A DNA stretch of 63,889 nt, filler included, from Octopus bimaculoides (lineage: Eukaryota): NCBI RefSeq assembly GCF_001194135.2. It is 6 parts of 6 records of this genome, joined end to end, with 100 filler letters (N's around TTAATTAATTAA, not from the genome) between each part and the next. Parts side by side here need not be neighbours in the genome. Positions count along the whole stretch, not along the records: positions 3,206 to 27,549 come from NW_026329821.1; 5 more parts are not named here. One strand, given 5' to 3'. The position numbers and the translations under genes are program-made. The notes below the pieces were generated by a model, which was given only the letters and a program-made list of their open reading frames with translations, did not search any database and was not told the DNA's origin. The number at the start of each line of letters is the position of its first letter. Within the stretch, counting starts at the first letter, position 1. Below are positions 3,206 through 26,106 of this stretch, piece by piece.

Positions 3206-3642
3206 ACCCCTTGACCATAATGGCCCATGTAGATCTTCTCTTCGCTGTTTAAGGACTTGAGCAAACTTCCCAGTTCCTGGCCCTTTATAAACGCGTCGTC
3301 GTCAGCACGGATGAAATATTCGTATTTATCGGCATGGTTCTCGTGTAGATACTTCAGCATCTCGAATACTTTGCCCTGAGGCGGGTAGACGTTGTCTGGT
3401 ACGCGATTCAGCCTCACTAAGGGCATCCCGGGAGGGGCCGGGTCTGTGGTGTTGCCGACGAAGAAGACCACATCGCCAGGGATCGATTTCAGCCACGTCA
3501 TTCGGATGGCCCAGTCTCGGGTTTCGAAGTACTGCGAACTCGTCATGACGCCGACCAGAACAAGTTTTTTCTTGGGACCCGGATTGAATTGGAAATCTCC
3601 GAGTTCTTCGAGGAAAGGCTCAATCGGGACCTTTGCGATATT
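3206..3642 (-). CDS. Chondroitin sulfate synthase-like gene A, GT31/Fringe-like exon, truncated by spacer
   Basis: Acceptor TCTTTCAG|AAT at 3642, phase 0. Translation includes LVLVGVMTSSQYFETR, TWLKSIPGDVVFF, DNVYPPQGKVFEMLKYLHE, KYEYFIRADDDAFIKG and IYMGHYGQG, collinear with the remembered CHSY1 N-domain (FVGVMTAQKYLQTR...YPPQKK...WFMRADDDVYIKG). Confidence 0.92.
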
Positions 3643-3749
3643 CTGAAAGAGTACAAGAGGGGAAAAAAAAGTCATTATCGTAGTCAACATCATCATCATC
3701 ATCATCATCATCATTATTGTCATCATCACTACCATCACCATCATCATTG

Positions 3750-3785
<36 letters not shown>

Positions 3786-3931
3786 CCACCACCACCACCA
3801 CTACCTCAATCCTTTCTATATTAACCAAAATGAAGTAGATTGACAAATTTATTTTTTGAACCAGTTGAAGTTACACAAGATGTCGAAATATCGTTCACTA
3901 GATAACATTGGCACTCTTCTTTTAATTTTGA

Positions 3932-3971
<40 letters not shown>

Positions 3972-4320
3972 ATACATATANNNNNNNNNNNNNNNNNNNN
4001 NNNNNNNNNNNNNNNNNNNNNNNNNNNNNNNNNNNNNNNNNNNNNNNNNNNNNNNNNNNNNNNNNNNNNNNNNNNNNNNNNNNNNNNNNNNNNNNNNNNN
4101 NNNNNNNNNNNNNNNNNNNNNNNNNNNNNNNNNNNNNNNNNNNNNNNNNNNNNNNNNNNNNNNNNNNNNNNNNNNNNNNNNNNNNNNNNNNNNNNNNNNN
4201 NNNNNNNNNNNNNNNNNNNNNNNNNNNNNNNNNTTATTTATTTATGTGCGTGTGTGTCTATCTATCTATCTATCTATCTATCTATTTATCTACCTCTATG
4301 TATGTATGTATGTATGTATG

Positions 4321-4381
<61 letters not shown>

Positions 4382-4387
4382 GCATTT

Positions 4388-5069
4388 GTAATGGGCAGGA
4401 ACAAAGAGCCAACGTGAAAATTTGCGTTAAACTTGGGAAGTCTGCTTCAAAGACATTGAGTCTGCTTCAGAAAGCTTAAAGAAACGAGATAATAGTTCGT
4501 ACGCAATTTTTCGTTTGGTATTGATGCTTCAAAAGCGAATGAACGTTCCTTGAAGACGATGATTGATCTGGGTGACCCACCACGAGCCCCACCCTTGGAA
4601 GTGTGGTATTGTGTATGGAGAATTCATGCCCCAGGGTCAGACCGTCAATGAACGTTTTGAAGCATTTGAGGGAGAACATTCGGTGAAAGCAACCGGATCT
4701 GCGAAGCACGAAGAATTGGATTCTTCAACGATTCCTCCTCAATCTATTGAGTTTCTCGTCAAAAAAGAACATGGTATAACTTCCACATCCACCCTGTTCA
4801 CCAGATTTAGTGCCCACGGACTTCCATCTCTTCCCCAAGATAAGAATGCAGCTCAACACCATTGTCAAGATCTTGAGTGAATCACAGAAGGTCTTCCACT
4901 CGCTTACGGAAAACGACTTCCAGGCCAGATTCTAAAAGTGGCAGGAACACCGGGACGGGTGTATTGCTGCGCAAGGTGACTATTTCAAAGAAGATGATGT
5001 TAAAGCGAAGGTAAATAAGTTATTTTGTTATTAAACATTACTAGTCTGGGAAGCTTTTGATACCACCTC

Positions 5070-5072
<3 letters not shown>
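4388..5072 (+). mobile_element. Mariner transposon relic, internally deleted
   Basis: EQRANVKICVKLGKSASKTLSLLQKA (mariner N-terminus) and GIVYGEFMPQGQTVN with stops and frameshifts. 3' end CTTTTGATACCACCTCG followed by TA at 5071-5072 resembles a mariner TIR plus TSD. Confidence 0.85.
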
Positions 5073-5103
<31 letters not shown>

Positions 5104-5510
5104 TTATACACAAACATGCACATACAGATAAGTACATGCATACATACACACATAGTCAAATGCACATAGATATATGGGAGAATGTACGAAAAAAAACAAC
5201 AACAGACGAGGACAGGTGGTGCAAACAACAAAAGGATGTATTAGTTTAACGCTCGGGAATAGAGAAAGTCTTTAACGTTTCGAGCTACGCTCTTCAACAG
5301 AAAGAATACGGAGAAAACAAGGAGAAAAACACGGAGAAAAAAAATTGAATGGTGTTTGGTCAACGATCTATCATGGCTTCTGCGGCACATAGATATAAAT
5401 AGATGCAAAGAATAAAAATGATAAAAGAGAAAAGAATTATATGAAATTGAATTTCACATGAAATGAAAGAGAAAAAGATGGGGAAGTAACGACAAAAATG
5501 AAGTACTTAC

Positions 5511-5967
5511 TTGATTTTGTGTGTTGGAAGTTACGTCTAGACATTTCATATCGAAACATGTGTAGCATATCGACGTTGTCATTTGCATTCCAGCAAATAT
5601 ACTGATAACGAAAACTAAGACATCAGTAATTAATTTTTCTCTTCTCCTCATTTTCTTATTTATGATTTTCTTATTTGTTGGCAATGCATAGGCATCCGTA
5701 AATTTTGACTTGTTATCACAGAAGATATCGCCGGCTTTCCTCTTCGCTATGCTGCCAATGTAAGAATGGGTAAGAAAATAGCTTCTGTTGAGATTGATGT
5801 TGGCGGGGGTGGTGTATCCGACACAGTTGCTGATGTCATCGTTTTTTACACCAGTGTAGTCACTTGGTTGACTGTTAGCTGAAAGTGCTGCAGATATTTC
5901 GTCAGCACCTGCAGGAGATAATGGTGTTACTGTTGTGTCATGTGCTTGACAATGCTGAGAATGGTTC
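5511..5967 (-). CDS. CHSY-like gene A, exon with N-terminal tail and type II signal anchor
   Basis: Donor CAA|GTAAGT at 5511, phase 0, matches the 3642 acceptor. Basic MRRREK then hydrophobic LITDVLVFVISIFAGMQMTT. Frame is open from candidate acceptor TACAG|G at 5967 (phase 2). Internal ATG at 5651 is an alternative start. Confidence 0.75.
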
Positions 5968-6589
5968 CTGTATCGATTCAGTGGTTTGTTGAGATATTGG
6001 GCATCATTTAATAAGTTCAAACACCAAGATATTTTTTGTTTCGAAGTTTGGAGAAATGTTTTAAAATTTGTTGTCGTTGTTGTTGTTGGTGGTGATTCAA
6101 TTCATGGAAATTTTGTTGTTTTTTTTAATAATTTTTAATTTTGCATTTTTCGATTTTGGTAGAAAAAAATGTGGGGGAAAAATTGAAAAAGAAAAAAAAG
6201 AAACAAAATGAGTGAGAAAGAAAGACGGAGATATAAAATGAATTAATTAATATGATTATTAATAATTAATAATTAACAAAATATTGGTTTCGAATTTTGG
6301 CACAAGACCAGCATTTTCAGGAGAAGGGGTAAGTCAACTGGTACTTATTTTATCGACCATGGAAAAATGAAAAGTAAAATACGACGTCGTCATAAGCGAC
6401 GGAGTGCCAACAACAACTATATTCATCCTCATTCTCTTTTTGATGTCAGGTTCCATAAATCTTTTCAAATTAAGCTGAAATCTGATATCAGAAACTATAG
6501 GAGCTTTAAAAATAGGTTCGTACTTGATGATAAGACCAATAACCTGTATAGAATTGCTAAATGACACCATTTCCACCAAATATAAAATG

Positions 6590-6990
6590 GCCAACATAGA
6601 CAGGCACAATGGTATTAATATTCAGGCTAAATTCCATGCTAAACGTAATAAAATCGACAATAGATTAGAATGCTTAGGAAAAAGGGAAGCTTTTACTGCT
6701 TGAAAGGACCATAAACCTAATTTAGGTAGTAACTTGTAGATTGTTAAACCCAGCGAGGACTGAAATGGGCCAGAAGCTAAAAAAATATTAAGAAACATTG
6801 ATAACAAAATTAGAGAGACCACTAGGCGACAACAATAAAATAATAGTTTTACTGTAATAAATTGGTTCAAAAACATTAAGAATAAACGTAGGGTTAGATT
6901 TATTCAGTTTGACATTATAAATTTTTACCCTCCATATTAAGATTGCTGCTTGATAAAGCCATCGAGTTTGTTAAATCATATGTTGATGCA
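6590..6990 (+). mobile_element. Penelope-like element reverse transcriptase relic
   Basis: Reads REAFTA*KDHKPNL...KKILRNIDNKIRETT...VINWFKNIKNK...FIQFDIINFYP, matching remembered Penelope RT motifs (KDHKPNF; WFKNI; FIQFDIVDFYP), with stops. Confidence 0.75.
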
Positions 6991-7032
6991 GATCCTGTAG
7001 ACGAAGACTTTATCAAAGATGAAAAAAAATGT

Positions 7033-7210
7033 CGGCTGTGTGTTAAGTAGCTTGCTTACCAACCATGTGGTTCTGGGTTCATTCCCACTGCGTGACACCT
7101 TGGGCAAGTGTCTTCTACTATAGCCTTGGGCTGACCAAACCCTTGTGAGTGGATTTGGTAGACGGAAACTGAAAGAAGCCCGTCGTATATATATATATAT
7201 ATATATATAT
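7033..7210 (+). mobile_element. SINE family A, 5' half
   Basis: GGCTGTGTGTTAAGTAGCTTGCTTACCAACCATGTGGTTCTGGGTTCATTCCCACTGCGTGACACCTTGGGCAAGTGTCTTC, running into (AT)n and a gap. Confidence 0.85.
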
Positions 7211-7634
7211 NNNNNNNNNNNNNNNNNNNNNNNNNNNNNNNNNNNNNNNNNNNNNNNNNNNNNNNNNNNNNNNNNNNNNNNNNNNNNNNNNNNNNNNNNN
7301 NNNNNNNNNNNNNNNNNNNNNNNNNNNNNNNNNNNNNNNNNNNNNNNNNNNNNNNNNNNNNNNNNNNNNNNNNNNNNNNNNNNNNNNNNNNNNNNNNNNN
7401 NNNNNNNNNNATTTCTAAGTCTCTCTAAAGGAGACTACGGCAGCGGTACTGGAAATTAATAGTTATCGCCAAGCCATCATGGCAGTCCCAAAATTAGGAC
7501 GAAAGCTGCCGTGAATTAGCTCCAAGAAGCCATCGCCTCTAGCTAGCTATGTGACACACGAAACCTGTGTCCTTTATAACCTTCGAACATATATATATGT
7601 AGGTGTGTGTATATGTTTGGGTGTCTGTGTATGA

Positions 7635-7792
7635 ATCATCATCATCATCATCATCGTTTAACGTCCGCTTTCCATGCTAGCATGGGTTGGACGATTTGAC
7701 TGAGGATTGGTGAAACCGGATGGCAACACCAGGCTCCAGTCTGATTTGGCAGAGTTTCTACAGCTGGATGCCCTTCCTAACGCCAACCACTC
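7635..7792 (-). mobile_element. Family D retroposon 3' end with (GAT)n tail
   Basis: Reverse complement of GTGGTTGGCGTTAGGAAGGGCATCCAGCTGTAGAAAC...CATGGAAAGCGGACGTTAAACGATGATGAT; about eight related copies in the window. Confidence 0.75.
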
Positions 7793-7819
7793 ATGTATGT
7801 ATGTATGTATGTTTGTATA

Positions 7820-8120
7820 TATGTTGTTATTTAGTTTTATTTCAAGATTTCATGCCAATAGAGAAATAGCTGGTTTCTAGCCTATTTTCAACAACCTCAA
7901 GAGGGTATTTTGTATGTATGTATGTAATTATTCTGTTTATTTCAAGATTTCTTGCCAATAGAGAAAGAACCGGTTTCTAACCTAGATCCAAGGGTCCTTC
8001 ATTGGAATTTCAACATCAACAACAAGGTATTTTTGTTTATATGTATGTATGTATGTGCAGATTTGTATGTTTTATGTACGTATTCTCATGCATATAGCTA
8101 CATATCTAGACATGCTCATA
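7820..8120 (-). mobile_element. 3' UTR fragment of the RLE retrotransposon seen at 47490-47799, with partly duplicated end
   Basis: 8020-8115 is the reverse complement of 47690-47799 (GAGCATGTCTAGATATGTA...AAAAATACCTTGTTGTTGATG), which directly follows the RLE ORF stop. It ends in (TATG)n. Confidence 0.65.
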
Positions 8121-8549
8121 TACAGGCAATTAAAAAATAAACAAGGCATACTTTGTTTTATGTGTTCCTTGTTTTTTTTCTTTTTTTTCTTTTTTGTCTT
8201 TTTGGAAAATCAGGGTGGGATGCCTTTGATTGGGGATCTTCTCATTTAGGGGTACAGGGGTTTATTGAGTCCCACAACAAAAAAAAGCCAAATATAAACA
8301 ACAAAATAACTATCAAGAATTTATATTTTGAGAAGCTGGTGGTCCATTGTATACATACATACATACATACATACATACACATATACACACATGCATGCAC
8401 GCACACACACACACACACATACATATATGCATGTATATAGCCATATATATGTATACACAAGCATACACACATATATTTATATATATATATATATACACGC
8501 ATATGCATATATATATATATGTATATATACATGTGTGTGTATGTGTATA

Positions 8550-8589
<40 letters not shown>

Positions 8590-9214
8590 TGTGTGTGTAT
8601 GTATATATATATATATATATATATATGCACATATATACTTATATATTGATTATATCCATATATGTATGTATANNNNNNNNNNNNNNNNNNNNNNNNNNNN
8701 NNNNNNNNNNNNNNNNNNNNNNNNNNNNNNNNNNNNNNNNNNNNNNNNNNNNNNNNNNNNNNNNNNNNNNNNNNNNNNNNNNNNNNNNNNNNNNNNNNNN
8801 NNNNNNNNNNNNNNNNNNNNNNNNNNNNNNNNNNNNNNNNNNNNNNNNNNNNNNNNNNNNNNNNNNNNNNNNNNNNNNNNNNNNNNNNNNNNNNNNNNNN
8901 NNNNNNNNNNNNNNNNNNNNNNNNNNNNNNNNNNNNNNNNNNNNNNNNNNNNNNNNNNNNNNNNNNNNNNNNNNNNNNNNNNNNNNNNNNNNNNNNNNNN
9001 NNNNNNNNNNNNNNNNNNNNNNNNNNNNNNNNNNNNNNNNNNNNNNNNNNNNNNNNNNNNNNNNNNNNNNNNNNNNNNNNNNNNNNNNNNNNNNNNNNNN
9101 NNNNNNNNNNNNNNNNNNNNNNNNNNNNNNNNNNNNNNNNNNNNNNNNNNAATGGTGGGTTTATGGGAGCTGAAAACATTAAAAAGAAACCAACTTATCA
9201 AAAATTTTACTCAC

Positions 9215-9222
9215 CGATACAT
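9215..9222 (-). CDS. CHSY-like gene A, predicted first coding exon (ATG TAT CG)
   Basis: Minus strand CAACAATGTATCG|GTGAGT: A at -3, consensus donor, phase 2. Joining to 5967 gives M-Y-R-N-H-S-Q in frame with the signal-anchor exon. Confidence 0.6.
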
Positions 9223-9572
9223 TGTTGTTGTTGTTCTTGTTGTTGTTGATGTTACAGTAATTAAAGGAGAGAAACTTCAGACGTTGATGACCATCACCAA
9301 AGAGGAGAGGCAAACGCAGAGACAGTTGGGGCAGCGATGGTAAGTATGACTAGATTTCCTGGATGGCAGCATAAAAGCCTTCGTTTAATAAGGGTGGATG
9401 TACGGGTGGGTGCAAGCGTTTGTTCGTGGGTTTATGTATGAATGTATGAACATATGCAGGAGTGCGTGTGTGTGTGTATGAATGAATACATGAATATAAA
9501 TATATATACATAACATATATAAATAAATATACATGTGCATGTACATACATGTATATATATATGTATATATAT

Positions 9573-9610
<38 letters not shown>

Positions 9611-9682
9611 TGATAGATAGATAGATAGATAGATAGATTCTTTATACATAAATATTATAGTCTATGTACACTTGTATATACC

Positions 9683-9753
<71 letters not shown>

Positions 9754-10874
9754 GTATACATATATTTTAATATTTCACTTAGGCATAGCAAAACTTGTGT
9801 ATGTGTGTGTGTGGCGTATATGCGTAAGAAGAAAATAAAATAAGATTTTAAAACAATCCCAGGTAGATATATGTATATATGTCAACGTTATAGCAGAATA
9901 AAAATATGGGTAGGTAGGTAAGTAACTAGTGTTTAGTCAAGCTGTAATAGTCTTATATTAACTTACTTATATATCTGTACAACACATACGGAGAGACTAA
10001 TGCTGCTAAGAAGTTGAAATCTGCAGAGATCAATGAATTATTGTGACACACTTCGAGTAGTTTTACCTGTGTAAACGCTTATTTCTTTTACCTGTGAACA
10101 GCTCGACTGATACATTACTCACAAACAATCAGCGTTTAGTCAGCTGTGAACATCTATGCTTTTTATTCGCTGCCGTTGAAATCTGTGTTTTGGACTAGGA
10201 AGTCAATCAGCCTGTTGTTGGTAATGTGCCTGTTGTTGTGCACCAAATTCAACCGTGTTTTTTTTTTTTACTGTAGATTAACACACACATACACACACAC
10301 ATATATATATATATATATANNNNNNNNNNNNNNNNNNNNNNNNNNNNNNNNNNNNNNNNNNNNNNNNNNNNNNNNNNNNNNNNNNNNNNNNNNNNNNNNN
10401 NNNNNNNNNNNNNNNNNNNNNNNNNNNNNNNNNNNNNNNNNNNNNNNNNNNNNNNNNNNNNNNNNNNNNNNNNNNNNNNNNNNNNNNNNNNNNNNNNNNN
10501 NNNNNNNNNNNNNNNNNNNNNNNNNNNNNNNNNNNNNNNNNNNNNNNNNNNNNNNNNNNNNNNNNNNNNNNNNNNNNNNNNNNNNNNNNNNNNNNNNNNN
10601 NNNNNNNNNNNNNNNNNNNNNNNNNNNNNNNNNNNNNNNNNNNNNNNNNNNNNNNNNNNNNNNNNNNNNNNNNNNNNNNNNNNNNNNNNNNNNNNNNNNN
10701 NNNNNNNNNNNNNNNNNNNNNNNNNNNNNNNNNNNNNNNNNNNNNNNNNNNNNNNNNNNNNNNNNNNNNNNNNNNNNNNNNNNNNNNNNNNNNNNNNNNN
10801 NNNNCCAGCATGGAAAGCGGACGTTAAACGATGAGGATAATGATGATGATGATATATATATACATATATGTATG

Positions 10875-10965
<91 letters not shown>

Positions 10966-11214
10966 GTATGTGAAAATTATAAGGGTAGAAAATTTAGAAA
11001 AATTTTCATACAGAAACTCGAGTTTGTGATTAACTGTAAATAATCGTTGTTTTCATTCTCCTTGGGATTACTCTTTTTCATGGTTTGGGTTTGGCTGCCC
11101 TCTCTAGCATGTAAGGCACCCTGTAAAGGGTCGCCTCTTTGTGTATAAATACTATACACTTTTAAATATATGAAAATATGTAGTCTATTGACTTTCATTA
11201 TGCATGCTAACCAT

Positions 11215-11518
11215 CCCTGTCACATTCTGTGTCACATTAAATCTCCTCTAGAGCTACGTTAAGCATACATGTGTCTGTGGAGTGCTCAGCCACTCACGCG
11301 TTAATTTCATGAGCAGGCTGTTCCATTGACCAGATCAACTGGGACACACATTGTCATTACCGATGGAGGCCCCAGTTATTTCAAGTTCATCCCAGTCCAC
11401 TCAGCTGGCAAAAATGAATTGTACCTGTAATTCAAAAGGGGCCAGCCATGATATATACTGTGCCAAGTTCAATCTCCTTGAGAACAACGTTAAAGATACG
11501 CATGTATGTGGAGTACTC
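11215..11518 (+). mobile_element. Two tandem decayed SINE family B 3' fragments
   Basis: Two copies of the CTACGTTAAG...GTGGAGTGCTCAGC motif shared with full copies at 32255 and 54623. Confidence 0.7.
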
Positions 11519-12870
11519 AGCAAGATATTTGGTAGCAGAAATTATTAGACAGAAAAGGAAAAGTCACACAGTTGGTGAGAGCTTAAAACTACCAGCTTGT
11601 AAAATTGTGGTCGGTAAAATGCTTGGGCAATATGCAATACAAGCAATTGAAAATGTTCCACTTATGTTACAATAAGTCAACGCGTTGATGACATGGTACG
11701 TGACATTGAAAAACTTTGGCGTGACAAATTGAAAAATTGAAGTTTTTCTATTCAGACTGATAATTGTTGTGTAGCTTTTGTAAAATTATCAATGTGGTGA
11801 AATTCAAGAAAATTTCCTGTGTTGCAAAGAACTGCCCGAGACAAGCAAAGGAATAGATGTATTCAACATTTTTTTCCCTCATAGCGCAGGAGTGGCTGTG
11901 TGGTAAGTAGCTTGCTTACCAACCACATGGTTCCGGGTTCATTCCCACTGCGTGGCACCTTGGGCAAGTGTCTTCTACTATAGCCTCGGGCCGACCAAAG
12001 CCTTGTGAGTGGATTTGGTAGACGGAAACAGAAAGAAATCTGTCGTATANNNNNNNNNNNNNNNNNNNNNNNNNNNNNNNNNNNNNNNNNNNNNNNNNNN
12101 NNNNNNNNNNNNNNNNNNNNNNNNNNNNNNNNNNNNNNNNNNNNNNNNNNNNNNNNNNNNNNNNNNNNNNNNNNNNNNNNNNNNNNNNNNNNNNNNNNNN
12201 NNNNNNNNNNNNNNNNNNNNNNNNNNNNNNNNNNNNNNNNNNNNNNNNNNNNNNNNNNNNNNNNNNNNNNNNNNNNNNNNNNNNNNNNNNNNNNNNNNNN
12301 NNNNNNNNNNNNNNNNNNNNNNNNNNNNNNNNNNNNNNNNNNNNNNNNNNNNNNNNNNNNNNNNNNNNNNNNNNNNNNNNNNNNNNNNNNNNNNNNNNNN
12401 NNNNNNNNNNNNNNNNNNNNNNNNNNNNNNNNNNNNNNNNNNNNNNNNNNNNNNNNNNNNNNNNNNNNNNNNNNNNNNNNNNNNNNNNNNNNNNTTGTCC
12501 CCCCAACATCGCTTGACAACTGATGCTGGGGTGTTTACGTCCCCGTAACTTAGCGGTTCGGCAAAAGAGACCGATAGAATAAGTACTAGGCATCCAAAGA
12601 ATAAGTCCTTGGGTCGATTTGTTCGACTAAAGGCGGTGCTCCAGCATGGCCACAGTCAAATGACTGAAACAAGTAAAAGAGTAAAAGAGATATCTGGAAA
12701 CAAGAGGTCTCTCCTGGAAGGACTGTATTGGCATTTGTCCAGATGGCGCCCCATCAATGGTTAGCTTCCATAAAAGGTTTTGTTTCTCTTGTAACACAAA
12801 AAAAATCCCAATATAATCTCAACACACTGCTTTATCGTCTCAGAGATTATTACCACAGGAAGTAGCAAAC
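11519..12870 (+). mobile_element. hAT (Buster/Charlie-like) transposase relic split by a SINE A insertion
   Basis: ARYLVAEII..KSHTVGESLKLPAC and ENFLCCKELPETSKGIDVFNI lie before the SINE; YLETRGLSWKDCIGICPDGAPSMV and THCF resume at 12691. Confidence 0.8.
11884..12690 (+). mobile_element. SINE family A, full length, gap at internal microsatellite
   Basis: A-box TGGCTGTGTGG, B-box GGTTCATTCCC, CCTTGGGCAAGTG core, tail CAGTCAAATGACTGAAACAAGTAAAAGAGTAAAAGAG. Confidence 0.9.
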
Positions 12871-13012
12871 ACAATCTTTAATCGTAAATCAACTCACAAA
12901 AGTTGGAGAAATGACAAGGCCAAAGGAAATGAACCATTCAACTGGTCGAGTATGTGTAATCAGGTTATACGTACGTATTATAGTTCGTAATTTATTACTC
13001 CTTGGTGAATCA

Positions 13013-13055
<43 letters not shown>

Positions 13056-13418
13056 NNNNNNNNNNNNNNNNNNNNNNNNNNNNNNNNNNNNNNNNNNNNN
13101 NNNNNNNNNNNNNNNNNNNNNNNNNNNNNNNNNNNNNNNNNNNNNNNNNNNNNNNNNNNNNNNNNNNNNNNNNNNNNNNNNNNNNNNNNNNNNNNNNNNN
13201 NNNNNNNNNNNNNNNNNNNNNNNNNNNNNNNNNNNNNNNNNNNNNNNNNNNNNNNNNNNNNNNNNNNNNNNNNNNNNNNNNNNNNNNNNNNNNNNNNNNN
13301 NNNNNNNNNNNNNNNNNNNNNNNNNNNNNNNNNNNNNNNNNNNNNNNNNNNNNNNNNNNNNNNNNNNNNNNNNNNNNNNNNNNNNNNNNNNNNNNNNNNN
13401 NNNNNNNNNNNNNNNNNN

Positions 13419-15556: not shown

Positions 15557-16299
15557 GCTCTCTTATCGTCTACTTTTGATTTCTCTCTCTCTCTCTCTCT
15601 CTCTCCTAACGAAGTTCTTTATCGCTTGTTTTATACCGCGTCTCCGTCCCTCTCTATCACACACGCACTCTTTCTCTCTCTCTCTCTAATCTCCCTCACT
15701 CTTAAAATAACATATTTCTCTTTATTCATTGACATACACTCTTTCCCACAATCCTCCCCCTACTCTCTCCCCTTATCTCTCTCTCTCTATCTTTCGTTTC
15801 CCTCTTAATCAATCTATCCCCCTCCCTCACAATCTGTCTTTCTCGCAGTACGTTTCACCTCTTCCTCCTCCTTCTCCGTCAGTGACAGCAGCCTCTCTCC
15901 CTCTCCATCTCCCTCTCACACAGCTACGCACACTTACGCTATCAGTAGTCGTCACTCCCTTTCTGTCAATGCTCCTCTCTCTCTATCTCTTTCTTTCTCT
16001 CTTACTCCCTCTTTCCCTCCTCATCGTTTCAAACGCTCTCCCTCTCATATCTATTATCCGCTCTAAAACCACCCTTCCCTTCACACACACACATTTTCTC
16101 TCTATAGCTATAACCCTCTCATTCTCCTACCACCACTCTACGCGCTTATACTCTTTCTCTCTTTCTCTCTCTTTCCAACTCTTACCTCCCCGTCTACGAT
16201 TTACCTACACGCCTCTTCCTCTCCCTCTTTGAAAGCCACGTATACACTATATACCTCTTTTTCTCACACCTTCTCTACACCCGCTTTACTCCCTCCCTT

Positions 16300-16363
<64 letters not shown>

Positions 16364-16730
16364 ACCTTCGATATCCCGGTTTTATTTCCTCTCTGCGTTT
16401 TCTATATTTCACTTTCTCCTCCCCTTCTCTCTCTCTCTCTTTCTCTCTCCTCTTTTCGTCTGCTTTTCATCTCCGTCACTCTCTCTCTCTCTCTCTCTCC
16501 CTCTCTCTCCCTCTCTCTCTCTCTCTCTATCCCTCTTCCACTACACCTCCTTAACGCCTTCACTCGCAAAGCTAACATATCCTCTTCTTCTCCGTCCCTA
16601 CAACAGCTATACTACCTCCCTCTCTCCCTCTCTCTCTCCCTATCTCTCTCCGTCACACTCTATCTGTTACACTCTCTCTATCTGTCACACTCTCTCTCTA
16701 TCTGTCACTCTCTCTCTCTATCGCTCTCCC
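15172..16730. repeat. About 1.55 kb CT-rich polypyrimidine tract with recurring CTCTTATCGTCTGCTTTT motif
   Basis: Plus strand is strongly purine-poor, with (CT)n runs interrupted by variants of the same motif. Confidence 0.9.
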
Positions 16731-17039
16731 TTCGATACGCTCAGTCTTCAGGTGTGACAAATATACGAAGCGCCAAGGTGAGTAAAACGCCTTTTTTCTT
16801 GTGTTTATTTTATATCAAACTGAGATTATTTTTTCTTCACTTCGAACCCCTAAACCCGGCACACACACACACACACACATACACACACACACACACATAC
16901 ACGTACATACATACATATATACATATATACATCCGTACATTCCGTTGACGTATGGTAGCTCCTGCAAATCGATTTTTACTTCCGTCGTCAGAAACCGGCT
17001 ACAACAATTAACTATACATCCTTTTATTCTGTTATCCTA

Positions 17040-17458
17040 TTACTTGTTTCAGTCATTTTGACTGCGGCCATGCTGGAGCACCGCCCCCCAGTCGAACAAA
17101 TCGACCCCTGGACTTATTCTTAGTAAGCCTAGCGCTTATTCTATCGGTCTGTTTGGCCGAACCGCTTGACTACGAGTCCGTAAACACACCAGCATCAGTT
17201 GTCAAGCGATGGTGGGGGACAAACACACACACACAAATACACACACACGCACACATACACACACATATATATATATATACATTTATATATATATATAGAC
17301 AGGCTTCTTTCAGTTTCTGTTTACCAAATCCACTCACAAGGCTCTGGTTGGCCCGAGGCCATAGTAGAAGACACTTGCCCAAGGTGTCACGCAGTGAGAC
17401 AACCTGGAACCATGTGGTTAGTAAGCAAGCTTCTTACCACACAGCCACTCTTGCGCCT
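17040..17458 (-). mobile_element. SINE family A, full length
   Basis: Reverse complement of tail, internal (CA)/(TA) tract and head (CCACACAGCCACTCTTGCGCC). Confidence 0.88.
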
Positions 17459-18232
17459 CACTAAACCTTTTTTGTATTTTCTCTCTCTGTTTATTTCTGT
17501 GTTACTTTCTGCTGAAGAGCGTAGGCTCGAAACATAAAAGACTTCCGCACTTCCCGAGCGTTTGTTGTTTACACACCTGTCTTCGTCTTTTATTTTGTTT
17601 ATTTTTTTTGTAAATTCCAAATATATATATATANNNNNNNNNNNNNNNNNNNNNNNNNNNNNNNNNNNNNNNNNNNNNNNNNNNNNNNNNNNNNNNNNNN
17701 NNNNNNNNNNNNNNNNNNNNNNNNNNNNNNNNNNNNNNNNNNNNNNNNNNNNNNNNNNNNNNNNNNNNNNNNNNNNNNNNNNNNNNNNNNNNNNNNNNNN
17801 NNNNNNNNNNNNNNNNNNNNNNNNNNNNNNNNNNNNNNNNNNNNNNNNNNNNNNNNNNNNNNNNNNNNNNNNNNNNNNNNNNNNNNNNNNNNNNNNNNNN
17901 NNNNNNNNNNNNNNNNNNNNNNNNNNNNNNNNNNNNNNNNNNNNNNNNNNNNNNNNNNNNNNNNNNNNNNNNNNNNNNNNNNNNNNNNNNNNNNNNNNNN
18001 NNNNNNNNNNNNNNNNNNNNNNNNNNNNNNNNNNNNNNNNNNNNNNNNNNNNNNNNNNNNNNNNNNNNNNNNNNNNNNNNNNNNNNNNNNNNNNNNNNNN
18101 NNNNNNNNNNNNNNNNNNNNNNNNNNNNNNNNNNNNNNNNNNNNNNNNNNNNNNNNNNNNNNNNNNNNNNNNNNNNNNNNNNNNNNNNNNNNNNNNNNNN
18201 NNNNNNNNNNNNNNNNNNNNNNNNNNNNNNNN

Positions 18233-18415
18233 GCTACACCAGGCTCCAATCTGATTTGGCAGAGTTTCTACAGCTGGATGCCCTTCCTATTCCAGGTGTA
18301 GAAACTCTGCCAGATCAGATTGGAGTCTGGTGTAGCCATCTCGTTCACCAGTCCTCAGTCAAACCGTCCAACCAATGCTAGCATGGAAAGCGGATGTTAA
18401 ACGATGATGATGATA
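18233..18415. mobile_element. Family D, inverted pair forming a hairpin
   Basis: 18233-18272 is the reverse complement of 18297-18336 apart from two G-U positions; the plus copy continues to a (GAT)n tail. Confidence 0.8.
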
Positions 18416-18699
18416 TAATACATTGTATTGAAATAAATAAGTTTCCCCCAAATTAGACATATATATAGAAACATACACAAAACATACACACACACATATA
18501 TACATACAATTGACCCACATACATACTCTCACAGACACACAAATATTTTACCCAAACATTTCCATAAACACTCCCAAACATTCACACACTTATCGAGCCT
18601 TACACTAAAAATACAATAGATTTCTTCCAAGCAGTCTTGGATGAATAGGTTTATCTTTTGATATCGTGTTTCACTAAAATGTAGAAAATATGATTTTTC

Positions 18700-18906
18700 T
18701 GGGGGTGGGGGTGGGGGTTATTGAAAACCTTGTAGATTTTTTTAACAGACTTCCGGGAGACTACCTTTATGGAATATCGCAGTATAGACTGTGGCCCTCT
18801 TGAGCACGGGTCCCCCTTCGGCGCGGGTCCCCCTTCGGCGCGGGTCCCCCTTCGGCGCGGGTCCCGATTGAGAGCAATCAGTCCACTCAGCTTAAGGCCA
18901 GCCCTG
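18700..18906. mobile_element. End of a probable hAT-type MITE with a 17-bp GC-rich tandem repeat
   Basis: (GGGTCCCCCTTCGGCGC)x3 at 18808-18858, then CTTAAGGCCAGCCCTG, which resembles remembered CAGGGCCGGCCTTAAG termini. The other end was not found. Confidence 0.5.
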
Positions 18907-19908
18907 CTTCCACACTCGACAGTTTCCAACTTCCACACTCAACTTCCACACATCTCTAGATTCCTTTTCTACTCTTCCACACACGACAATTTCAACATTC
19001 TGCCCCCAACTTTTGCATATTCAAACTTCCTTTCTACTCTTCCACACTCGACAGNNNNNNNNNNNNNNNNNNNNNNNNNNNNNNNNNNNNNNNNNNNNNN
19101 NNNNNNNNNNNNNNNNNNNNNNNNNNNNNNNNNNNNNNNNNNNNNNNNNNNNNNNNNNNNNNNNNNNNNNNNNNNNNNNNNNNNNNNNNNNNNNNNNNNN
19201 NNNNNNNNNNNNNNNNNNNNNNNNNNNNNNNNNNNNNNNNNNNNNNNNNNNNNNNNNNNNNNNNNNNNNNNNNNNNNNNNNNNNNNNNNNNNNNNNNNNN
19301 NNNNNNNNNNNNNNNNNNNNNNNNNNNNNNNNNNNNNNNNNNNNNNNNNNNNNNNNNNNNNNNNNNNNNNNNNNNNNNNNNNNNNNNNNNNNNNNNNNNN
19401 NNNNNNNNNNNNNNNNNNNNNNNNNNNNNNNNNNNNNNNNNNNNNNNNNNNNNNNNNNNNNNNNNNNNNNNNNNNNNNNNNNNNNNNNNNNNNNNNNNNN
19501 NNNNNNNNNNNNNNNNNNNNNNNNNNNNNNNNNNNNNNNNNNNNNNNNNNNNNNNNNNNNNNNNNNNNNNNNNNNNNNNNNNNNNNNNNNNNNNNNNNNN
19601 NNNNNNNNNNNNNNNNNNNNNNNNNNNNNNNNNNNNNNNNNNNNNNNNNNNNNNNNNNNNNNNNNNNNNNNNNNNNNNNNNNNNNNNNNNNNNNNNNNNN
19701 NNNNNNNNNNNNNNNNNNNNNNNNNNNNNNNNNNNNNNNNNNNNNNNNNNNNNNNNNNNNNNNNNNNNNNNNNNNNNNNNNNNNNNNNNNNNNNNNNNNN
19801 NNNNNNNNNNNNNNNNNNNNNNNNNNNNNNNNNNNNNNNNNNNNNNNNNNNNNNNNNNNNNNNNNNNNNNNNNNNNNNNNNNNNNNNNNNNNNNNNNNNN
19901 NNNNNNNT

Positions 19909-20841
19909 TTCAGCCTGTCCCGCAACAGCTGGTGGCAGAAAGAGCAGAGTGTGAGGCGGACGAAGACGGGGCAGTCGTCAAGAAGAGGGGCCGGCGGTGG
20001 GGGACCCATTCCAGCTCCCCCACCCGACCCGCCGGCCCCGAAGCCACTCTTTGACCACGTCATAATGCATTTCGTCGACTCGAGCCTGTACAGGGAGAAG
20101 AAACGAAGTTTTGTACCCCCGCTGTGGTCGTCAGAGAACGAGGCACACAAGGGTGAAGGCGGTGGCAGCGCCAAAAGCACTACAACAAATGACATGGAGG
20201 AGTCTGAAGTTGTGGTGGCCATGGATGGGTTGGTGAGGTCATCGGTGAATGAGGGTTTCGAGAAAGTACTTCGGTTGCTGGTTGCGAATGATAGTGGAAT
20301 CCGTATGTCTGAACATGGATATATCTTCGTTGCAGGCGATGTCTTGTTGGACGAGACAACGTTCTATAACCTCGTCAATTATGTACAGATCAAAAGCATG
20401 TCAAAAACGACGGCGCGAACTGTCAACACAAACGAGAAAAATGTCAAAAGGCAGCTGTTGTTCAACGGTGGTGACGGTGGTACTGGCGGACGAGCAGCTT
20501 TCAGATCGTCAATGGCCATGGCACAAACGTGGGACGATGGGAAGAACTGTACTCACCACCGTCGTCATCACGAATCTCCTCGTTATCGGCCGGGCGCAAA
20601 TGTCAAACATGGCAACGACTGTGAGTTCGTCGAAGGAATCGTAGTGACACCTGACAAACTGGACGAGTTCAGGAGACAACGCACGGCTGTCAACTGCGGT
20701 AGCAGCTCCGATGGACAGACGAGAAGATGCAAGACAAAGCAGGCCGAAGGCAGGTTCGCAGATTCAGACACAGGAGGAGCCACGAGTTCTCACTTCTACC
20801 TTGCGGACGCTTCTTATGTCCAGTGTTTCTTCAACTCAAAG
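19909..20841 (+). CDS. CHSY-like gene B, exon encoding a degenerate GT31-like domain
   Basis: Open for about 310 codons and GC-rich. Donor AAG|GTAAAA at 20841, phase 0, matches the 24508 acceptor. Weak collinear similarity to the CHSY N-domain: YIFVAGDVLL at WFMRADDDVYI, EFVEGIVVT at FCMGGPGVIMS, ADASYVQCF at HEDVEVGRCV. The 5' boundary is either TTCAG|C at 19914 or lies in the preceding gap. Confidence 0.75.
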
Positions 20842-20869
20842 GTAAAAACGCATCTTTTGGTAGCTCCTT

Positions 20870-21195
20870 TATTCTTCTTCTTTTTCTTCTTCTTCTTCTT
20901 TGTCTTCTTCTTCTCTTCCTTGCCTCCCTCTTCTTCTTCTTCTTCTTCTTCTCATTTTCCTTCTTCTTTTCCTTCTTCTCCTTCTTCTTCTTCTTCTTCT
21001 TTTTTTCCTTCTTCTTCTTCTTCTTCTTCTTCTTCTTTTCCTTCTTCTTTCCCTTCTTCTTCTTCTTCTTTTCCTTCTTCTTCTTCTTCTTCTTCTTCTT
21101 TTCCTTCTTCTTCTTCTTCTTCTTCTTCTTCTTCTTCTTCTTCTTCTTCTTCTTCTCTTCCTTGCCTCCCTCTTCTTCTTCTTCTTCTTCTTCTC
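20870..21195. repeat. Interrupted (TTC)n tract
   Basis: About 320 bp of TTC with TTT/TCC interruptions, starting about 30 nt after the donor. Confidence 0.95.
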
Positions 21196-21284
21196 ATTAT
21201 ATACATACATAAATAAATATACAGACGCCTACATACACACGCATTCATTCATTCATTCATTCATTCATACATACTTACATACAT

Positions 21285-21320
<36 letters not shown>

Positions 21321-21621
21321 GTGTGTGCATATATATTCATATGCCTTTCTATATTTATTTACAGAGCCTATTTTAGAGGTGACTGGTGCGACGTGGCAGC
21401 CAATGCGTCTTTCGTTTTCTTCTCCAACAGTCTGTTATAAATCAAAGGAGATTTAGTTGTTATTTTTCGCAGATCAAGTAACCTACCACCACCAACACCA
21501 GCACCACACCCTGTCATGAGAAATTTACTATGGATTACGTGGACTGGCCTATTCATGAATAATTGCATAGAAAAACATTATTGTTTTCTATATAATATAT
21601 TTATACGTACACACTCTATCC

Positions 21622-21664
<43 letters not shown>

Positions 21665-22519
21665 NNNNNNNNNNNNNNNNNNNNNNNNNNNNNNNNNNNN
21701 NNNNNNNNNNNNNNNNNNNNNNNNNNNNNNNNNNNNNNNNNNNNNNNNNNNNNNNNNNNNNNNNNNNNNNNNNNNNNNNNNNNNNNNNNNNNNNNNNNNN
21801 NNNNNNNNNNNNNNNNNNNNNNNNNNNNNNNNNNNNNNNNNNNNNNNNNNNNNNNNNNNNNNNNNNNNNNNNNNNNNNNNNNNNNNNNNNNNNNNNNNNN
21901 NNNNNNNNNNNNNNNNNNNNNNNNNNNNNNNNNNNNNNNNNNNNNNNNNNNNNNNNNNNNNNNNNNNNNNNNNNNNNNNNNNNNNNNNNNNNNNNNNNNN
22001 NNNNNNNNNNNNNNNNNNNNNNNNNNNNNNNNNNNNNNNNNNNNNNNNNNNNNNNNNNNNNNNNNNNNNNNNNNNNNNNNNNNNNNNNNNNNNNNNNNNN
22101 NNNNNNNNNNNNNNNNNNNNNNNNNNNNNNNNNNNNNNNNNNNNNNNNNNNNNNNNNNNNNNNNNNNNNNNNNNNNNNNNNNNNNNNNNNNNNNNNNNNN
22201 NNNNNNNNNNNNNNNNNNNNNNNNNNNNNNNNNNNNNNNNNNNNNNNNNNNNNNNNNNNNNNNNNNNNNNNNNNNNNNNNNNNNNNNNNNNNNNNNNNNN
22301 NNNNNNNNNNNNNNNNNNNNNNNNNNNNNNNNNNNNNNNNNNNNNNNNNNNNNNNNNNNNNNNNNNNNNNNNNNNNNNNNNNNNNNNNNNNNNNNNNNNN
22401 NNNNNNNNNNNNNNNNNNNNNNNNNNNNNNNNNNNNNNNNNNNNNNNNNNNNNNNNNNNNNNNNNNNNNNNNNNNNNNNNNNNNNNNNNNNNNNNNNNNN
22501 NNNNNNNNNNNNNNNNNNN

Positions 22520-22561
<42 letters not shown>

Positions 22562-23526
22562 TCGGTGGCCACATAGACTCTTGAGCTAGAAATAAAAATC
22601 CCAAATTTCTTATATTCCCTCTCTATCAATGTAAAGACAGAAACGCTACACAAGAAAGAATCAACATGGAGAATCTTTTTTATTGAAAAATTCCAAACAC
22701 TTCTTAATATATAAACTCCACGGGGACTATATTCTTTTTTCTAACCTACCTCATTAAATCTTAGAACAGACAAAAGCATCCTGCTTACAAAGAATCCAGC
22801 ATTCAAATTAAAGAGTACGAAACTCACAGAATTATCTTCCCTTATCCACAGTAACTTTATAATCCCTTCCCTATTTCCAATTTGACGCATAAACATCCAG
22901 CCTTTTTGAAACAAAAAACACTACACAGAAACACATGCATCCTAACCCTTCCAACAATTTTTTCCAAGGAAAACCAGTGATCGTTAAAAGTTTAAAGACA
23001 CTATGATGTATTGGTATATTTATTTTTTTATACATTTTTTTTTTTTTTTTAAACATTTTTTACCTCCTTTCCATTTATATTAAATTATGCTTTCAGTTTA
23101 GCATTCATCATCATCATCGTCGTTGTCAAGCAATAGTGGGGGTACAAACACAGACACACACAAATATACACATATACACGACAATCTTCTTTCAGTTTCC
23201 GTGTACGAAATCCACTCCCAAGGTTTTGTCTGAAATTATAAAGTGTTTCCCCATAATGAAACTAATTGAAATTGAAACCATATAATAGTGAAACAATTAT
23301 ATCACCTTACAACAGACGTATGATTGTTTAACTTTGGACATGTAATACCGAAACGGTGTAAATGATTGCTCCAGGCTTGCATTGCGCTAGACTGAAAATT
23401 TGTTTGGCCCATGACAACCCATACAACCTAAGTAACGTATATATGCAATTTGAATAAAATCGGTTGGGTAGTTCTCGAATTTCAGAGATGTATATCTATA
23501 TATATACATGTATATACATACATATA

Positions 23527-23800
23527 TGTAGGCGCAGGAGTGGCTGTGTGGTAAGAAGCTTGCTTCCAAACCATATGGTTTCGGGTTGAGTCACACTGCG
23601 TGGCACCTTGGGCAAGTGTCTTCTACTATAGCCTCAGGCAGACCAAGGCCTTGTGAGTGGATTTGGTAGATGGAAACTGAGAGAAACCCGTCGTTTATGT
23701 GTATATATATATATGTGTGTGTGTGTGTATACATGTATAAATATATACTCTTTTACTTTTTCGGTCATTTGACTGTGGCCATGCTGGAGCACCGCCTTTA
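23527..23800. mobile_element. SINE A 5' half (plus) followed by a SINE A tail fragment (minus)
   Basis: Head at 23530; TCATTTGACTGTGGCCATGCTGGAGCACC at about 23765. Confidence 0.75.
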
Positions 23801-24189
23801 AAAAAATTATATATATATATGCATATATACAAACATATATGTACATACCGTCACACTGTATCACGCTGAATTTGTTTGTTCTCTGATAAATGTTTTTTTT
23901 ATATACATAGATGGATATGTGTTTGTGTGTGTGTATATATGTGTGTCTACATATATATGTATATATATATATATATATATNNNNNNNNNNNNNNNNNNNN
24001 NNNNNNNNNNNNNNNNNNNNNNNNNNNNNNNNNNNNNNNNNNNNNNNNNNNNNNNNNNNNNNNNNNNNNNNNNNNNNNNNNNNNNNNNNNNNNNNNNNNN
24101 NNGGCTCCTTGCTGTGCTCAAGAAGACTCGTGTTTCTCATAGAATTGTTAAAGCTACGTCCTCTGGTGGAGAGGATTGATCTGGGAATT

Positions 24190-24421
24190 CTTGTGTCGGT
24201 GCCACGAAAAGACACTCATGCCAGTGACTTGTAATAAGACTCATGTTGGTGCCACCTGAAAAGCACCTGGCACACATTGTAAAGTGGTTGGTGTTAGGAA
24301 GGGCATCCAGCCGTAGGGACCAAGTTAAATCAGACTGGAACCTAGTGCTGCCCCCTTGCTTTCTAACCCCTGTCGAACCATCTAACCCATGCCAACATGG
24401 AAAACGGACGTTAAAGGATGG

Positions 24422-24452
<31 letters not shown>

Positions 24453-24460
24453 AATGATGA
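24190..24460 (+). mobile_element. Family D retroposon 3' end
   Basis: GTGGTTGGTGTTAGGAAGGGCATCCAGCCGTAG...CATGGAAAACGGACGTTAAA plus (GAT)n. Confidence 0.75.
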
Positions 24461-24507
24461 AATGTCTTTTTTTATTCTTGTTAATTGTCTTCTTCCTCTA
24501 ATTACAG

Positions 24508-26106
24508 GTGAATGGTCAACGAGACATAGGACACACCTGCCAATGGAAAGAATCTCTGGGAAATCGTCAGATGGAAAACCTGAAGTTGACGGATGTGATA
24601 TCCCGCCAGGGTCCTCGACCTGCTTTCCAAGAACTCTATTTGTACTTCAAACAACAACATCTGCGGGAACTAATGTCAAGGAGTGCCTATCTACGCTCCG
24701 AAGTGTTTGCCACGAGTAAAATGGTTTCATTCTTAACTCATGGCAAGTCTCTTAGATACGACTATCAGAAACAGTTTGACACCTGGAACCGATATTGGAG
24801 CAGAAATCAGACAGCAGCTGTATCTGAAAGCTTTCTGGATGACGATACCCATTGGAAGTACACAAACGACCGCTACATCTACACAACCTATAACATACAT
24901 AAATCACCAGTGCAGAAATTGTTTTTCAAAGGCACTTTGAGACTTCTAGAGGATTCTTTGAATAATTTGTTTCACGAACTGAATTTCATGTCTCCTTTTC
25001 TGGAGAGCGTCAAGTTCCATCACTCTTACCAACACTTCTCACCGCTGTTCGGAGTGTGGCATTTTGTGAATGTTATCGCCTCCAGCAGTAACATGACGGT
25101 AAGTAAAAACACCACCACCAACAACAACAACAACAACAACAACAACAGCAGTGACAGGGGTAGGAACATTATGGCAGCAGTGACGGACAGGAAACTAGCC
25201 AATTTGATGTTTTTGACAGCTGAAAAATTCCGTCAACTTCAAGTGACCGAGTTCTCGAACTGGAGCGATCAGACATTTTTTTCATCGTCCTCATCATATT
25301 CATCATCATTGACCAGTGAACACATCAGCATTATAGTACCGGTGGCTGGACGAGATGACGCTTTTAACCGTTTCCATGCAATGTTACGCCCAGTTCTTGC
25401 CAACGACACAAACATCAGTTTCATATTCATCATATTTATTCAGGCAGGAAACAACGACAAAATAACGTTCATCAACCAACTACAATTGGAGTATCCGCAT
25501 GTTTCTATCCGCTCGGTGTTTAGAAGAACGACGTTTTCCCGAGCCGAAGCCCTGCAGATCGGAGTCAGTCTTGTCGAGCATGACGACGTCATCTTGTCGT
25601 TCATGGACATCGATATGGTGTTCACGAGTTCGTTTCTCGCCCGTGTCAGACAATTCACGGTCAGGCACCAGCGAGCGTATTTCCCAATCTACTTCAGTCA
25701 ATACGCGTCAGCCGACAAATGCGATCCGAGGTACCCTGCCCTGTGCGCCCCATTTCGCTTCCGACCCGACGACGGCTTCTGGCGCTTCTACGGTTACGGT
25801 ATGGCGTCCATTTACAAAAGTGACTTCCTGTCGGTGGGGGGTTATGATCTAAAGATCAAGGGCTGGGGGTTGGAAGATTTGAAATTGTATGAAACTTGCA
25901 TCAATAAAAACATGGAGGTGTTTCGAGCACCGGACCCAGGACTTGTACATATCTACCACAGCAAGAGCTGTTCCCCTTCGTTAGCAGCCAATCAGTACAG
26001 CATGTGCCAGGAAACCAAATTCAGTATTTACCTGCATGAACACACTTCAGCTGAACTGGTCTACGGAGAGCAGGAGTTGATAGATCGAACCCCACCGTGG
26101 AAATAA
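24508..26106 (+). CDS. CHSY-like gene B, terminal exon with an intact GT7/CHGN GalNAc-transferase domain
   Basis: Acceptor ATTACAG|GTG, phase 0; 532 codons to TAA. Motifs IIVPVAGR, FSRAEAL, FMDIDMVF (DxD), YFPIYFSQY, GFWRFYGYG, GGYDLKIKGWGLED and FRAPDPGLVHIYH match CHSY/CSGalNAcT. Confidence 0.95.
   Translation: MNGQRDIGHTCQWKESLGNRQMENLKLTDVISRQGPRPAFQELYLYFKQQHLRELMSRSAYLRSEVFATSKMVSFLTHGKSLRYDYQKQFDTWNRYWSRNQTAAVSESFLDDDTHWKYTNDRYIYTTYNIHKSPVQKLFFKGTLRLLEDSLNNLFHELNFMSPFLESVKFHHSYQHFSPLFGVWHFVNVIASSSNMTVSKNTTTNNNNNNNNNSSDRGRNIMAAVTDRKLANLMFLTAEKFRQLQVTEFSNWSDQTFFSSSSSYSSSLTSEHISIIVPVAGRDDAFNRFHAMLRPVLANDTNISFIFIIFIQAGNNDKITFINQLQLEYPHVSIRSVFRRTTFSRAEALQIGVSLVEHDDVILSFMDIDMVFTSSFLARVRQFTVRHQRAYFPIYFSQYASADKCDPRYPALCAPFRFRPDDGFWRFYGYGMASIYKSDFLSVGGYDLKIKGWGLEDLKLYETCINKNMEVFRAPDPGLVHIYHSKSCSPSLAANQYSMCQETKFSIYLHEHTSAELVYGEQELIDRTPPWK

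Follow-up and report, generated by a model that had tools for sequence, protein, structure and literature searches.

Do two chondroitin-synthase-family genes that lie head to head in the genome of Octopus bimaculoides make up a co-regulated two-subunit polymerase, or are they neighbours within an expanded gene family? The question was raised by an earlier note on a stretch of 63,889 nucleotides (the window; coordinates below count along it unless a record or locus is named), in which the piece from 3,206 to 27,549 carries gene A on the minus strand and gene B on the plus strand. Protein mapping and Pfam searches confirmed that both belong to the chondroitin synthase family and that they diverge. 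In the present study, we found that the A/B neighbourhood is real, the two being neighbours within a duplicated family, and that the unusual element is the architecture of gene B, in which a GT31 glucuronyltransferase domain appears to have decayed in front of an intact GT7 N-acetylgalactosamine (GalNAc) transferase domain. The head-to-head pair is an ordinary by-product of family expansion and adds little. Our best explanation as a whole, to which we assign a probability of about 0.6, is that the genes are neighbours from a duplicated family, A being a canonical synthase and B a half-active partner.

Results

The features on which the argument rests are as follows, with the strand in brackets where one applies.

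3206-3642 (minus): gene A coding exon 2 (LOC106883238, paralogue A2), which opens the GT31 (Fringe-like) glucuronyltransferase domain and contains RADDD; cut at the piece edge
3643-5510 (minus): gene A intron 1, donor gt at 5510-5509 and acceptor ag at 3644-3643; holds the gap 3981-4233 and microsatellites
5511-5972 (minus): gene A coding exon 1, cytoplasmic tail and signal-anchor helix LITDVLVFVISIFAGMQMTTSICY
5973-7013: gene A upstream flank, colinear with the orthologous locus of O. sinensis
7014-18416: intergenic stretch of short interspersed nuclear element (SINE)-like copies, microsatellites and CT-rich low complexity, with seven gaps
18417-19054: gene B upstream flank, orthologous to the same flank in O. 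sinensis and O. vulgaris; its last part is a tandem array that enters a gap
19055-19907: assembly gap over the gene B 5' end, ~144 codons: ATG, membrane anchor and beginning of the vestigial first domain
19909-20841 (plus): gene B coding exon 1 (XP_014789660.1), 5'-truncated by the gap; apparent decayed GT31 remnant; donor AAG followed by gtaaaa at 20841/20842
20842-24507 (plus): gene B intron, interrupted by the gaps 21665-22519 and 23981-24102; includes a ~320-nt (TTC)n run
24508-26106 (plus): gene B coding exon 2, with long helices, a predicted helix and beta-sheet module, the GT7 GalNAc-transferase and the stop; acceptor ttacag followed by GTG at 24507/24508

Gene B corresponds to XP_014789660.1 (P0001, 791 aa, 'chondroitin sulfate synthase 1'), whose residues 1-260 are matched at 100% by exon 1. 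Its frame is open from 19909, directly after the gap, and in O. vulgaris exon 1 of B is a single open reading frame (ORF) with 144 additional codons at its start, opening with MVRIPSRVLK... and including a membrane anchor; the gap 19055-19907 therefore conceals the true beginning of gene B. The length of the protein comes to ~990 residues, with a remnant of ~450 residues ahead of the helices.

In exon 2 of gene B, Pfam detected CHGN (E-value 2.8e-72) and Glyco_transf_7C (E-value 4.8e-11), and the exon scored higher with CHSY3 (160 bits) than with CHPF (31 bits). All nine GT7 catalytic residues (P626, R630, R697, D718, D720, E806, D807, H831 and H834, in human CHSY3 numbering; the list of GT31 and GT7 residues used throughout is that of PMC12748766) are kept in three Octopus species and also in P0004, a relative of B from another organism that is 39% identical and whose 764-aa ORF is complete on a transcript contig of 3.3 kb. 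In the AlphaFold model of B the GT7 domain is the sole confidently folded one, with a predicted local distance difference test score (pLDDT) of 76-94 across residues 530-760. The helices (297-359) and the helix and sheet region (402-498) are both modelled at low confidence, and the exon 1 region reaches a pLDDT of 23-38, with no confident fold over the N-terminal 300 residues. The best structural match of the model was CHSY3, followed by CHPF. The ratio of non-synonymous to synonymous substitution rates (dN/dS), computed for the O. bimaculoides copies against those of O. sinensis and O. vulgaris, was 0.15-0.17 in exon 2, where the linker part equals GT7, and 0.31 in exon 1. These values show that gene B is under purifying selection and not a pseudogene, and it is predicted to be functional.

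The first domain of gene B reads as a decayed GT31 domain. Exon 1 gave no Pfam family and no Fringe match, and VAGDV stands at the position of the synthase RADDD, so that the GT31-like region has neither DxD nor motif I. When the N-half of octopus B was compared with synthase GT31 domains and N-halves by hhalign and hmmsearch, nothing significant was obtained. P0004, which is also without DxD, aligns colinearly with GT31 across 163 columns (P=0.0017), and for this reason the first region of B is best taken as GT31-derived. As P0004 was found in another organism, the B type is not confined to Octopus.

Gene A was identified by an exhaustive protein search, in which exon 2 (3642-3208) matched at 100% residues 156-300 of P0016 (XP_014789656.1, 'uncharacterized protein LOC106883238', 306 aa); a word-index search with the exon query had returned nothing, which was a fault of the index without bearing on the gene. 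Exon 1 is a 100% match to residues 2-155 of P0165 (UniProt A0A0L8FHZ6, 724 aa), the cluster mate of P0016. The exon 2 acceptor reads ttttttttcccctcttgtactctttcag followed by AAT at 3643/3642 (a pyrimidine tract, then CAG), and beyond the piece edge the orthologues run on as ...GQG-VPGEIGKLG.... The first coding exon thus lies at 5972-5511; position 9222, which had been given as the start of gene A, is a (TTG)n microsatellite without CHSY similarity.

Read by eye, gene A exon 1 encodes MRRREK and then LITDVLVFVISIFAGMQMTTSICY, an N-terminal signal anchor as expected of a type II membrane protein. The annotated initial M falls on codon CGA at 5975-5973, not on an ATG. The first in-frame ATG is at 5651-5649, just ahead of the membrane anchor, and the O. 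sinensis model P0169 begins there (the Met of MRRREK). Upstream of this codon the frame is open without a Met in three species, and the dN/dS of the tail is 0.45-0.74, so that much of the N-terminal tail may be untranslated leader.

Exon 2 of gene A matched Pfam Fringe (E-value 3.5e-6), scored 105 bits with human CHSY3 compared with 24 bits for CHPF, and has a dN/dS of 0.05-0.08. The GT31 donor-site residues that fall inside the piece are kept in full (7 of 7: R187, D231, Y233, K238 and D261-263). The GT31 xED base and C-terminal His/Lys (CHSY3 D342, H394 and K397) lie off the piece and are absent from P0016 and P0165; the O. sinensis orthologue P0169 has HEDTE and LHPVK. The GT7 domain also lies off the piece: P0165 shows GWGKED and HIYHPKFC without the DxD segment, probably owing to an assembly gap, and P0169 has FIDIDM, GWGKED and HIYH. 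Overall, P0169 aligns along its whole length with human CHSY3 over residues 76-755 (421 bits) and retains RADDD, HED, LHPxK, DID, GWGKED and HxxH, with GT31 and GT7 both intact. Since the GT31 residues within the piece are kept and this orthologue is complete in both domains, gene A is predicted to be a canonical bifunctional chondroitin synthase and not a GT31-only protein.

These results uphold the domain states given in the earlier note (A with GT31 intact; B with GT31 degenerate and GT7 intact) but not its proposal of complementary subunits. As its orthologue P0169 has GT7, A is not short of that domain, and therefore A and B are not complementary halves. The note had called for recovery of the full A; a complete GT31 and GT7 protein is available as its O. 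sinensis orthologue, and the O. bimaculoides models are incomplete. The middle of GT31 is missing from both P0016 and P0165, and the DxD segment of GT7 from one of them as well, so that the assembly of gene A in this scaffold is incomplete.

A split-enzyme interpretation, in which A would have no GT7, was raised because P0017 stops at 691 aa and P0165 skips DxD; it was rejected, as P0167 and P0169 are complete. P0017, the O. vulgaris model of paralogue A1, ends early through a frame change in the last exon at L004 29863-29865 (OX597842.1). The missing part is present in the O. vulgaris DNA (L004 29865-30464) and is 99% identical to residues 666-865 of P0167, the O. sinensis A1.

Octopus carries at least three canonical synthase paralogues (A1, A2 and A3) together with B on one chromosome. 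P0167 (O. sinensis) and P0017 (O. vulgaris) represent A1, and P0171 and P0172 represent A3. Gene A of the window is A2, since each exon and the flanks give their highest identity to L008 (O. sinensis, P0169) and L007 (O. vulgaris, P0166 and a 438-aa model). A1 (P0017/P0167) was rejected as the orthologue of window A, because these two A2 loci match better throughout. In the flank, window 5455-6380, 6419-6561 and 6561-7013 match L008 10209-9332, 8652-8495 and 6910-6503 at 78-84%. The positions of the family in the two gap-free records are as follows.

O. sinensis CM016885.1: A3 at 5.06 Mb; B at 9,765,700-9,786,137 (minus); A2 from 9,858,852 (plus); A1 at 10.87 Mb
O. vulgaris OX597842.1: A3 not located; B at 29,917,295-29,937,113 (plus); A2 from 30,190,836 (plus); A1 at 22.24 Mb

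In O. sinensis (B at 9.77-9.79 Mb, A2 at 9.86-9.87 Mb, A1 at 10.87-10.89 Mb), B and A2 are head to head with 72.7 kb of gap-free sequence between their starts. In O. vulgaris the order is unchanged and B is flipped, hence not divergent, with 254 kb from the B end to the A2 start (254-274 kb). The head-to-head layout, which the note asked to confirm in other coleoids, was recovered in O. sinensis and not in O. vulgaris, and the divergent orientation is found in two of three assemblies. Exon A is absent within 10 kb upstream of B in both species, the orthologue lying farther off.

The nominal A-B interval in O. bimaculoides is 13.9 kb between starts, which is a minimum and includes 3.8 kb of N. 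Unique orthologous sequence stops at 7013 on the A side and resumes at 18417 on the B side, with multi-copy repeats and gaps between. No other gene was found between A and B in the window by an ORF Pfam scan, a tRNA or Rfam search or a CHSY-like tblastn, and no conserved unique block was found midway between them in the window.

In bidirectional promoter pairs, ~1 kb or less separates the two start sites. A and B resemble them in their divergent orientation and differ in distance, which is at least 13.9 kb here and 72.7 kb in O. sinensis. As the distances far exceed the shared-promoter range, a shared bidirectional promoter for A and B is not supported; in O. vulgaris the starts are 254-274 kb apart and B is flipped.

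The relationships of gene B were examined in a neighbour-joining tree of the GT7 region (~250 columns, 200 bootstraps), from which MIG-22, Drosophila Chpf and CSGalNAcT were left out. Octopus B grouped with P0003 and P0004 at 96% bootstrap, and this group was sister to the octopus A clade at 50%, within the synthases. Human CHPF fell far from these, in a separate group with the Ptychodera and Clavelina CHPF-like proteins. Of the phylogeny proposed in the note, the comparison with CHSY and CHPF was thus obtained and puts B inside the synthases.

The split between CHSY and CHPF predates Metazoa (Petit et al., PMC8022947); a true molluscan CHPF should therefore join the CHPF group, and B does not. 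CHPF is without the GT7 DxD, xED and His motifs (PMC12748766, PMC13389171). At the GT7 catalytic positions human CHPF has G-P-D, E-S and Q..R, and the nine residues have no counterpart in human CHPF or in the two CHPF-like proteins of invertebrate deuterostomes. The GT7 motifs and the tree, which is weak (short alignment, distance-based method, no protostome ChPF), thus place B with the synthases, and by its sequence B is not CHPF-like. The proposal that B is the counterpart of CHPF did not survive: every GT7 residue that CHPF has lost is kept, the bit score favours CHSY3 (160 against 31) and B falls outside the CHPF clade.

The piece belongs to the unplaced O. bimaculoides scaffold LGKD02034940.1 (41,753 bp, GCA_001194135.2), to whose coordinates a window coordinate x converts as x+14204; LGKD02034940.1 24269-41753 is identical base for base to window 10065-27549. 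The right edge of the piece is the end of the scaffold, and ~17.4 kb more of it lie to the left of 3206, outside the piece. G+C content is 40%, with dense microsatellites and SINE-like copies. The segment had been described as free of spacers; it holds 12 N runs, eight of which separate A and B and sum to 3,829 N, and the repeat finder returned mostly such runs.

3981-4233: gap inside gene A intron 1
7211-18232: seven intergenic gaps, with repeats on their flanks
19055-19907: gap of 853 N, the sole one to touch coding sequence (gene B 5' end)
21665-22519 and 23981-24102: gaps inside the gene B intron
26372-26524: gap 3' of gene B

Reading-frame continuity cannot be claimed across any of these gaps. 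One SINE-like element was found in both orientations at 7034-7206, 11894-12066, 13777-14181, 17037-17458, 23542-23714 and 26590-26762. Each copy matches at least 10 places in every octopus locus compared (27-41 kb each), and several assembly gaps adjoin copies.

Further repeats surround gene B. Window 18417-18929 matches L002 4943-5499 and L005 7232-7788, window 18859-19053 matches an array with a unit of ~72 nt, and the flank also holds a 17-nt repeat in 3.5 copies. Directly 5' of B, all three species have the ~72-nt tandem array together with a second array (window 18807-19053; L002 5500-9100; L005 7790-8070). In O. sinensis the array upstream of B extends over several kb and carries a 646-aa gene model antisense to the B 5' end, which has no Pfam match and looks spurious. 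Exon 1 of O. sinensis B changes frame at L002 9830-10013 (CM016885.1), where O. vulgaris and the window have a single ORF; the frameshift is probably an assembly indel, and because of it the NCBI model P0002 (O. sinensis B) starts at an internal Met.

Within the gene B intron, the (TTC)n run (20872-21194) begins 30 nt past the exon 1 donor, and the long poly-Ser/Phe frames that it makes, including a gap-spanning 815-aa 'ORF', were rejected as not coding. An (AAC)n run (25108-25147) encodes poly-Asn in the linker of B, and its length and composition vary among the three Octopus species. Just 3' of B, two 224-nt copies that are 98% identical (26142-26365 and 26525-26748) flank the gap 26372-26524. 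O. sinensis has five or six tandem copies of this unit there (L002 29723-30738), so the gap probably hides further ones.

Discussion

In the most economical reading, A and B would have become neighbours through local gene duplication in a family confined to one chromosome. Gene A would polymerise chondroitin with both active sites, its GT31 domain adding glucuronic acid and its GT7 domain adding GalNAc, and gene B would be capable of GalNAc transfer only. The CHSY-CHPF heterodimer is joined by bridging helices and cystatin domains (PMC13389171). Most likely, B would pair with at least one canonical paralogue as a dimer, using the region that matches this human interface; it probably dimerises with a family member, since the dimer-interface segment is kept under constraint equal to that of GT7. 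That would make B half active as a partner, comparable to EXT2 in its pairing with EXT1, and not fully dead like CHPF. In EXT2 the N-terminal domain is dead and the C-terminal transferase is active (PMC9675754). By this analogy it is plausible that A and B are physical partners. A2 is not marked out as the exclusive partner of B, because three canonical paralogues lie on the same chromosome.

Several points weigh against this explanation. Two independent assemblies, of O. bimaculoides and O. sinensis, show the divergent orientation, which could reflect constraint, not history, and shared enhancers or a common chromatin domain could still serve A and B. The node that makes B sister to A has a bootstrap of 50% in a neighbour-joining tree of ~250 columns, without protostome ChPF (MIG-22, Drosophila Chpf) or CSGalNAcT. 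The dimerisation of B is a proposal, and the helix and sheet region concerned is modelled at a pLDDT of 40-58. In O. bimaculoides, the A-B linkage itself spans eight gaps.

The strongest of the other explanations takes A and B as a dedicated, co-regulated two-subunit polymerase, in which B acts as the CHPF of A and the head-to-head layout coordinates expression. Human synthases require a family partner (PMC12748766, PMC13389171), EXT1-EXT2 provides a precedent, the interface region of B is under selection, and O. bimaculoides and O. sinensis have the head-to-head order and orientation in common. The spacing does not fit such coordination: the distance between starts is nominally 13.9 kb in O. 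bimaculoides, 72.7 kb in O. sinensis and 254-274 kb in O. vulgaris, where B is also flipped, and the interval holds only repeats, with no conserved block midway. Moreover, any of the three canonical paralogues is equally possible as a partner, and B is not CHPF-like in GT7 or in the tree. We therefore consider a dedicated polymerase unlikely.

Somewhat less probable still is that B works as a stand-alone or homodimeric GalNAc transferase in the role of CSGalNAcT, in initiation or extra elongation, with no special tie to A. Its complete GT7 motifs, the strong CHGN match, the eroded first domain and a model in which GT7 is the only confidently folded domain all suit this explanation, and Drosophila Csgalnact is a separate, minor contributor (PMC12630343). 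What it leaves aside is the ~450-residue remnant before the helices, which retains some constraint (dN/dS 0.31) and is GT31-derived as judged from P0004, as fits a two-domain ancestor. That the adjacency is a scaffolding artefact is very improbable: the record is an unplaced, gap-rich Illumina scaffold of 41.7 kb with eight gaps and only repeats between the genes, and O. vulgaris has another orientation and a 254 kb spacing, but the gap-free O. sinensis sequence has both orthologues adjacent in the same relative orientation, and O. vulgaris retains A and B as near neighbours on one chromosome.

Both genes are already publicly annotated under generic names, and our literature search found no paper on cephalopod or molluscan CHSY or CHPF genes, nor any that mentions the run accessions of P0004 and P0170. 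Recent structures show that of the human proteins CHSY1/3 alone are catalytic, with CHPF/CHPF2 as dead scaffolds. In the evolution of such pseudo-enzyme partners, a paralogue like that of octopus, with one active site lost and the other under selection, would be a natural intermediate, and would offer a simple test of whether a partner contributes to catalysis.

As a tentative suggestion, which we regard as possible but rather doubtful, the B type might represent an undescribed class of 'half-synthases', with the glucuronic acid domain decayed and the GalNAc domain working, derived from synthases independently of CHPF, occurring also outside Octopus (the expressed P0004) and acting as catalytically contributing partners of canonical synthases. 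If this is true, half-synthases would be the chondroitin counterpart of EXT2 and a living intermediate from enzyme to pseudo-enzyme. Three canonical synthases together with B in a cartilage-bearing mollusc may also bear on the abundant and unusual chondroitin sulfates of cephalopods.

Compared with known systems, gene A and its orthologue have in common with CHSY1/CHSY3 and SQV-5 the full GT31 and GT7 architecture and every named catalytic residue. The GT7 domain of B is of the same type; B differs in having no recognisable GT31, and octopus differs in carrying at least three such synthases on one chromosome. B resembles CHPF/CHPF2 in the loss of the GT31 DxD and in the family layout, including the helix and sheet region, but those proteins are obligate CHSY partners with both domains dead, whereas B retains all GT7 motifs. 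With the single-domain GT7 enzymes CSGALNACT1/2 and Drosophila Csgalnact, it shares the Pfam CHGN match and a predicted capacity for GalNAc transfer only, and it is set apart from them by its ~990 residues with a decayed GT31 remnant. The architecture of B, with GT31 decayed and GT7 intact, thus fits none of CHSY, CHPF and CSGalNAcT as described for vertebrates, Drosophila and C. elegans (PMC12630343, PMC12748766, PMC13389171). The closest likeness is to EXT1-EXT2, in which a full enzyme works with a partner of pseudo N-terminal and active C-terminal domain, as is proposed here for A and B; the glycosyltransferase families differ (GT47/GT64), and the pairing of A with B is our proposal.

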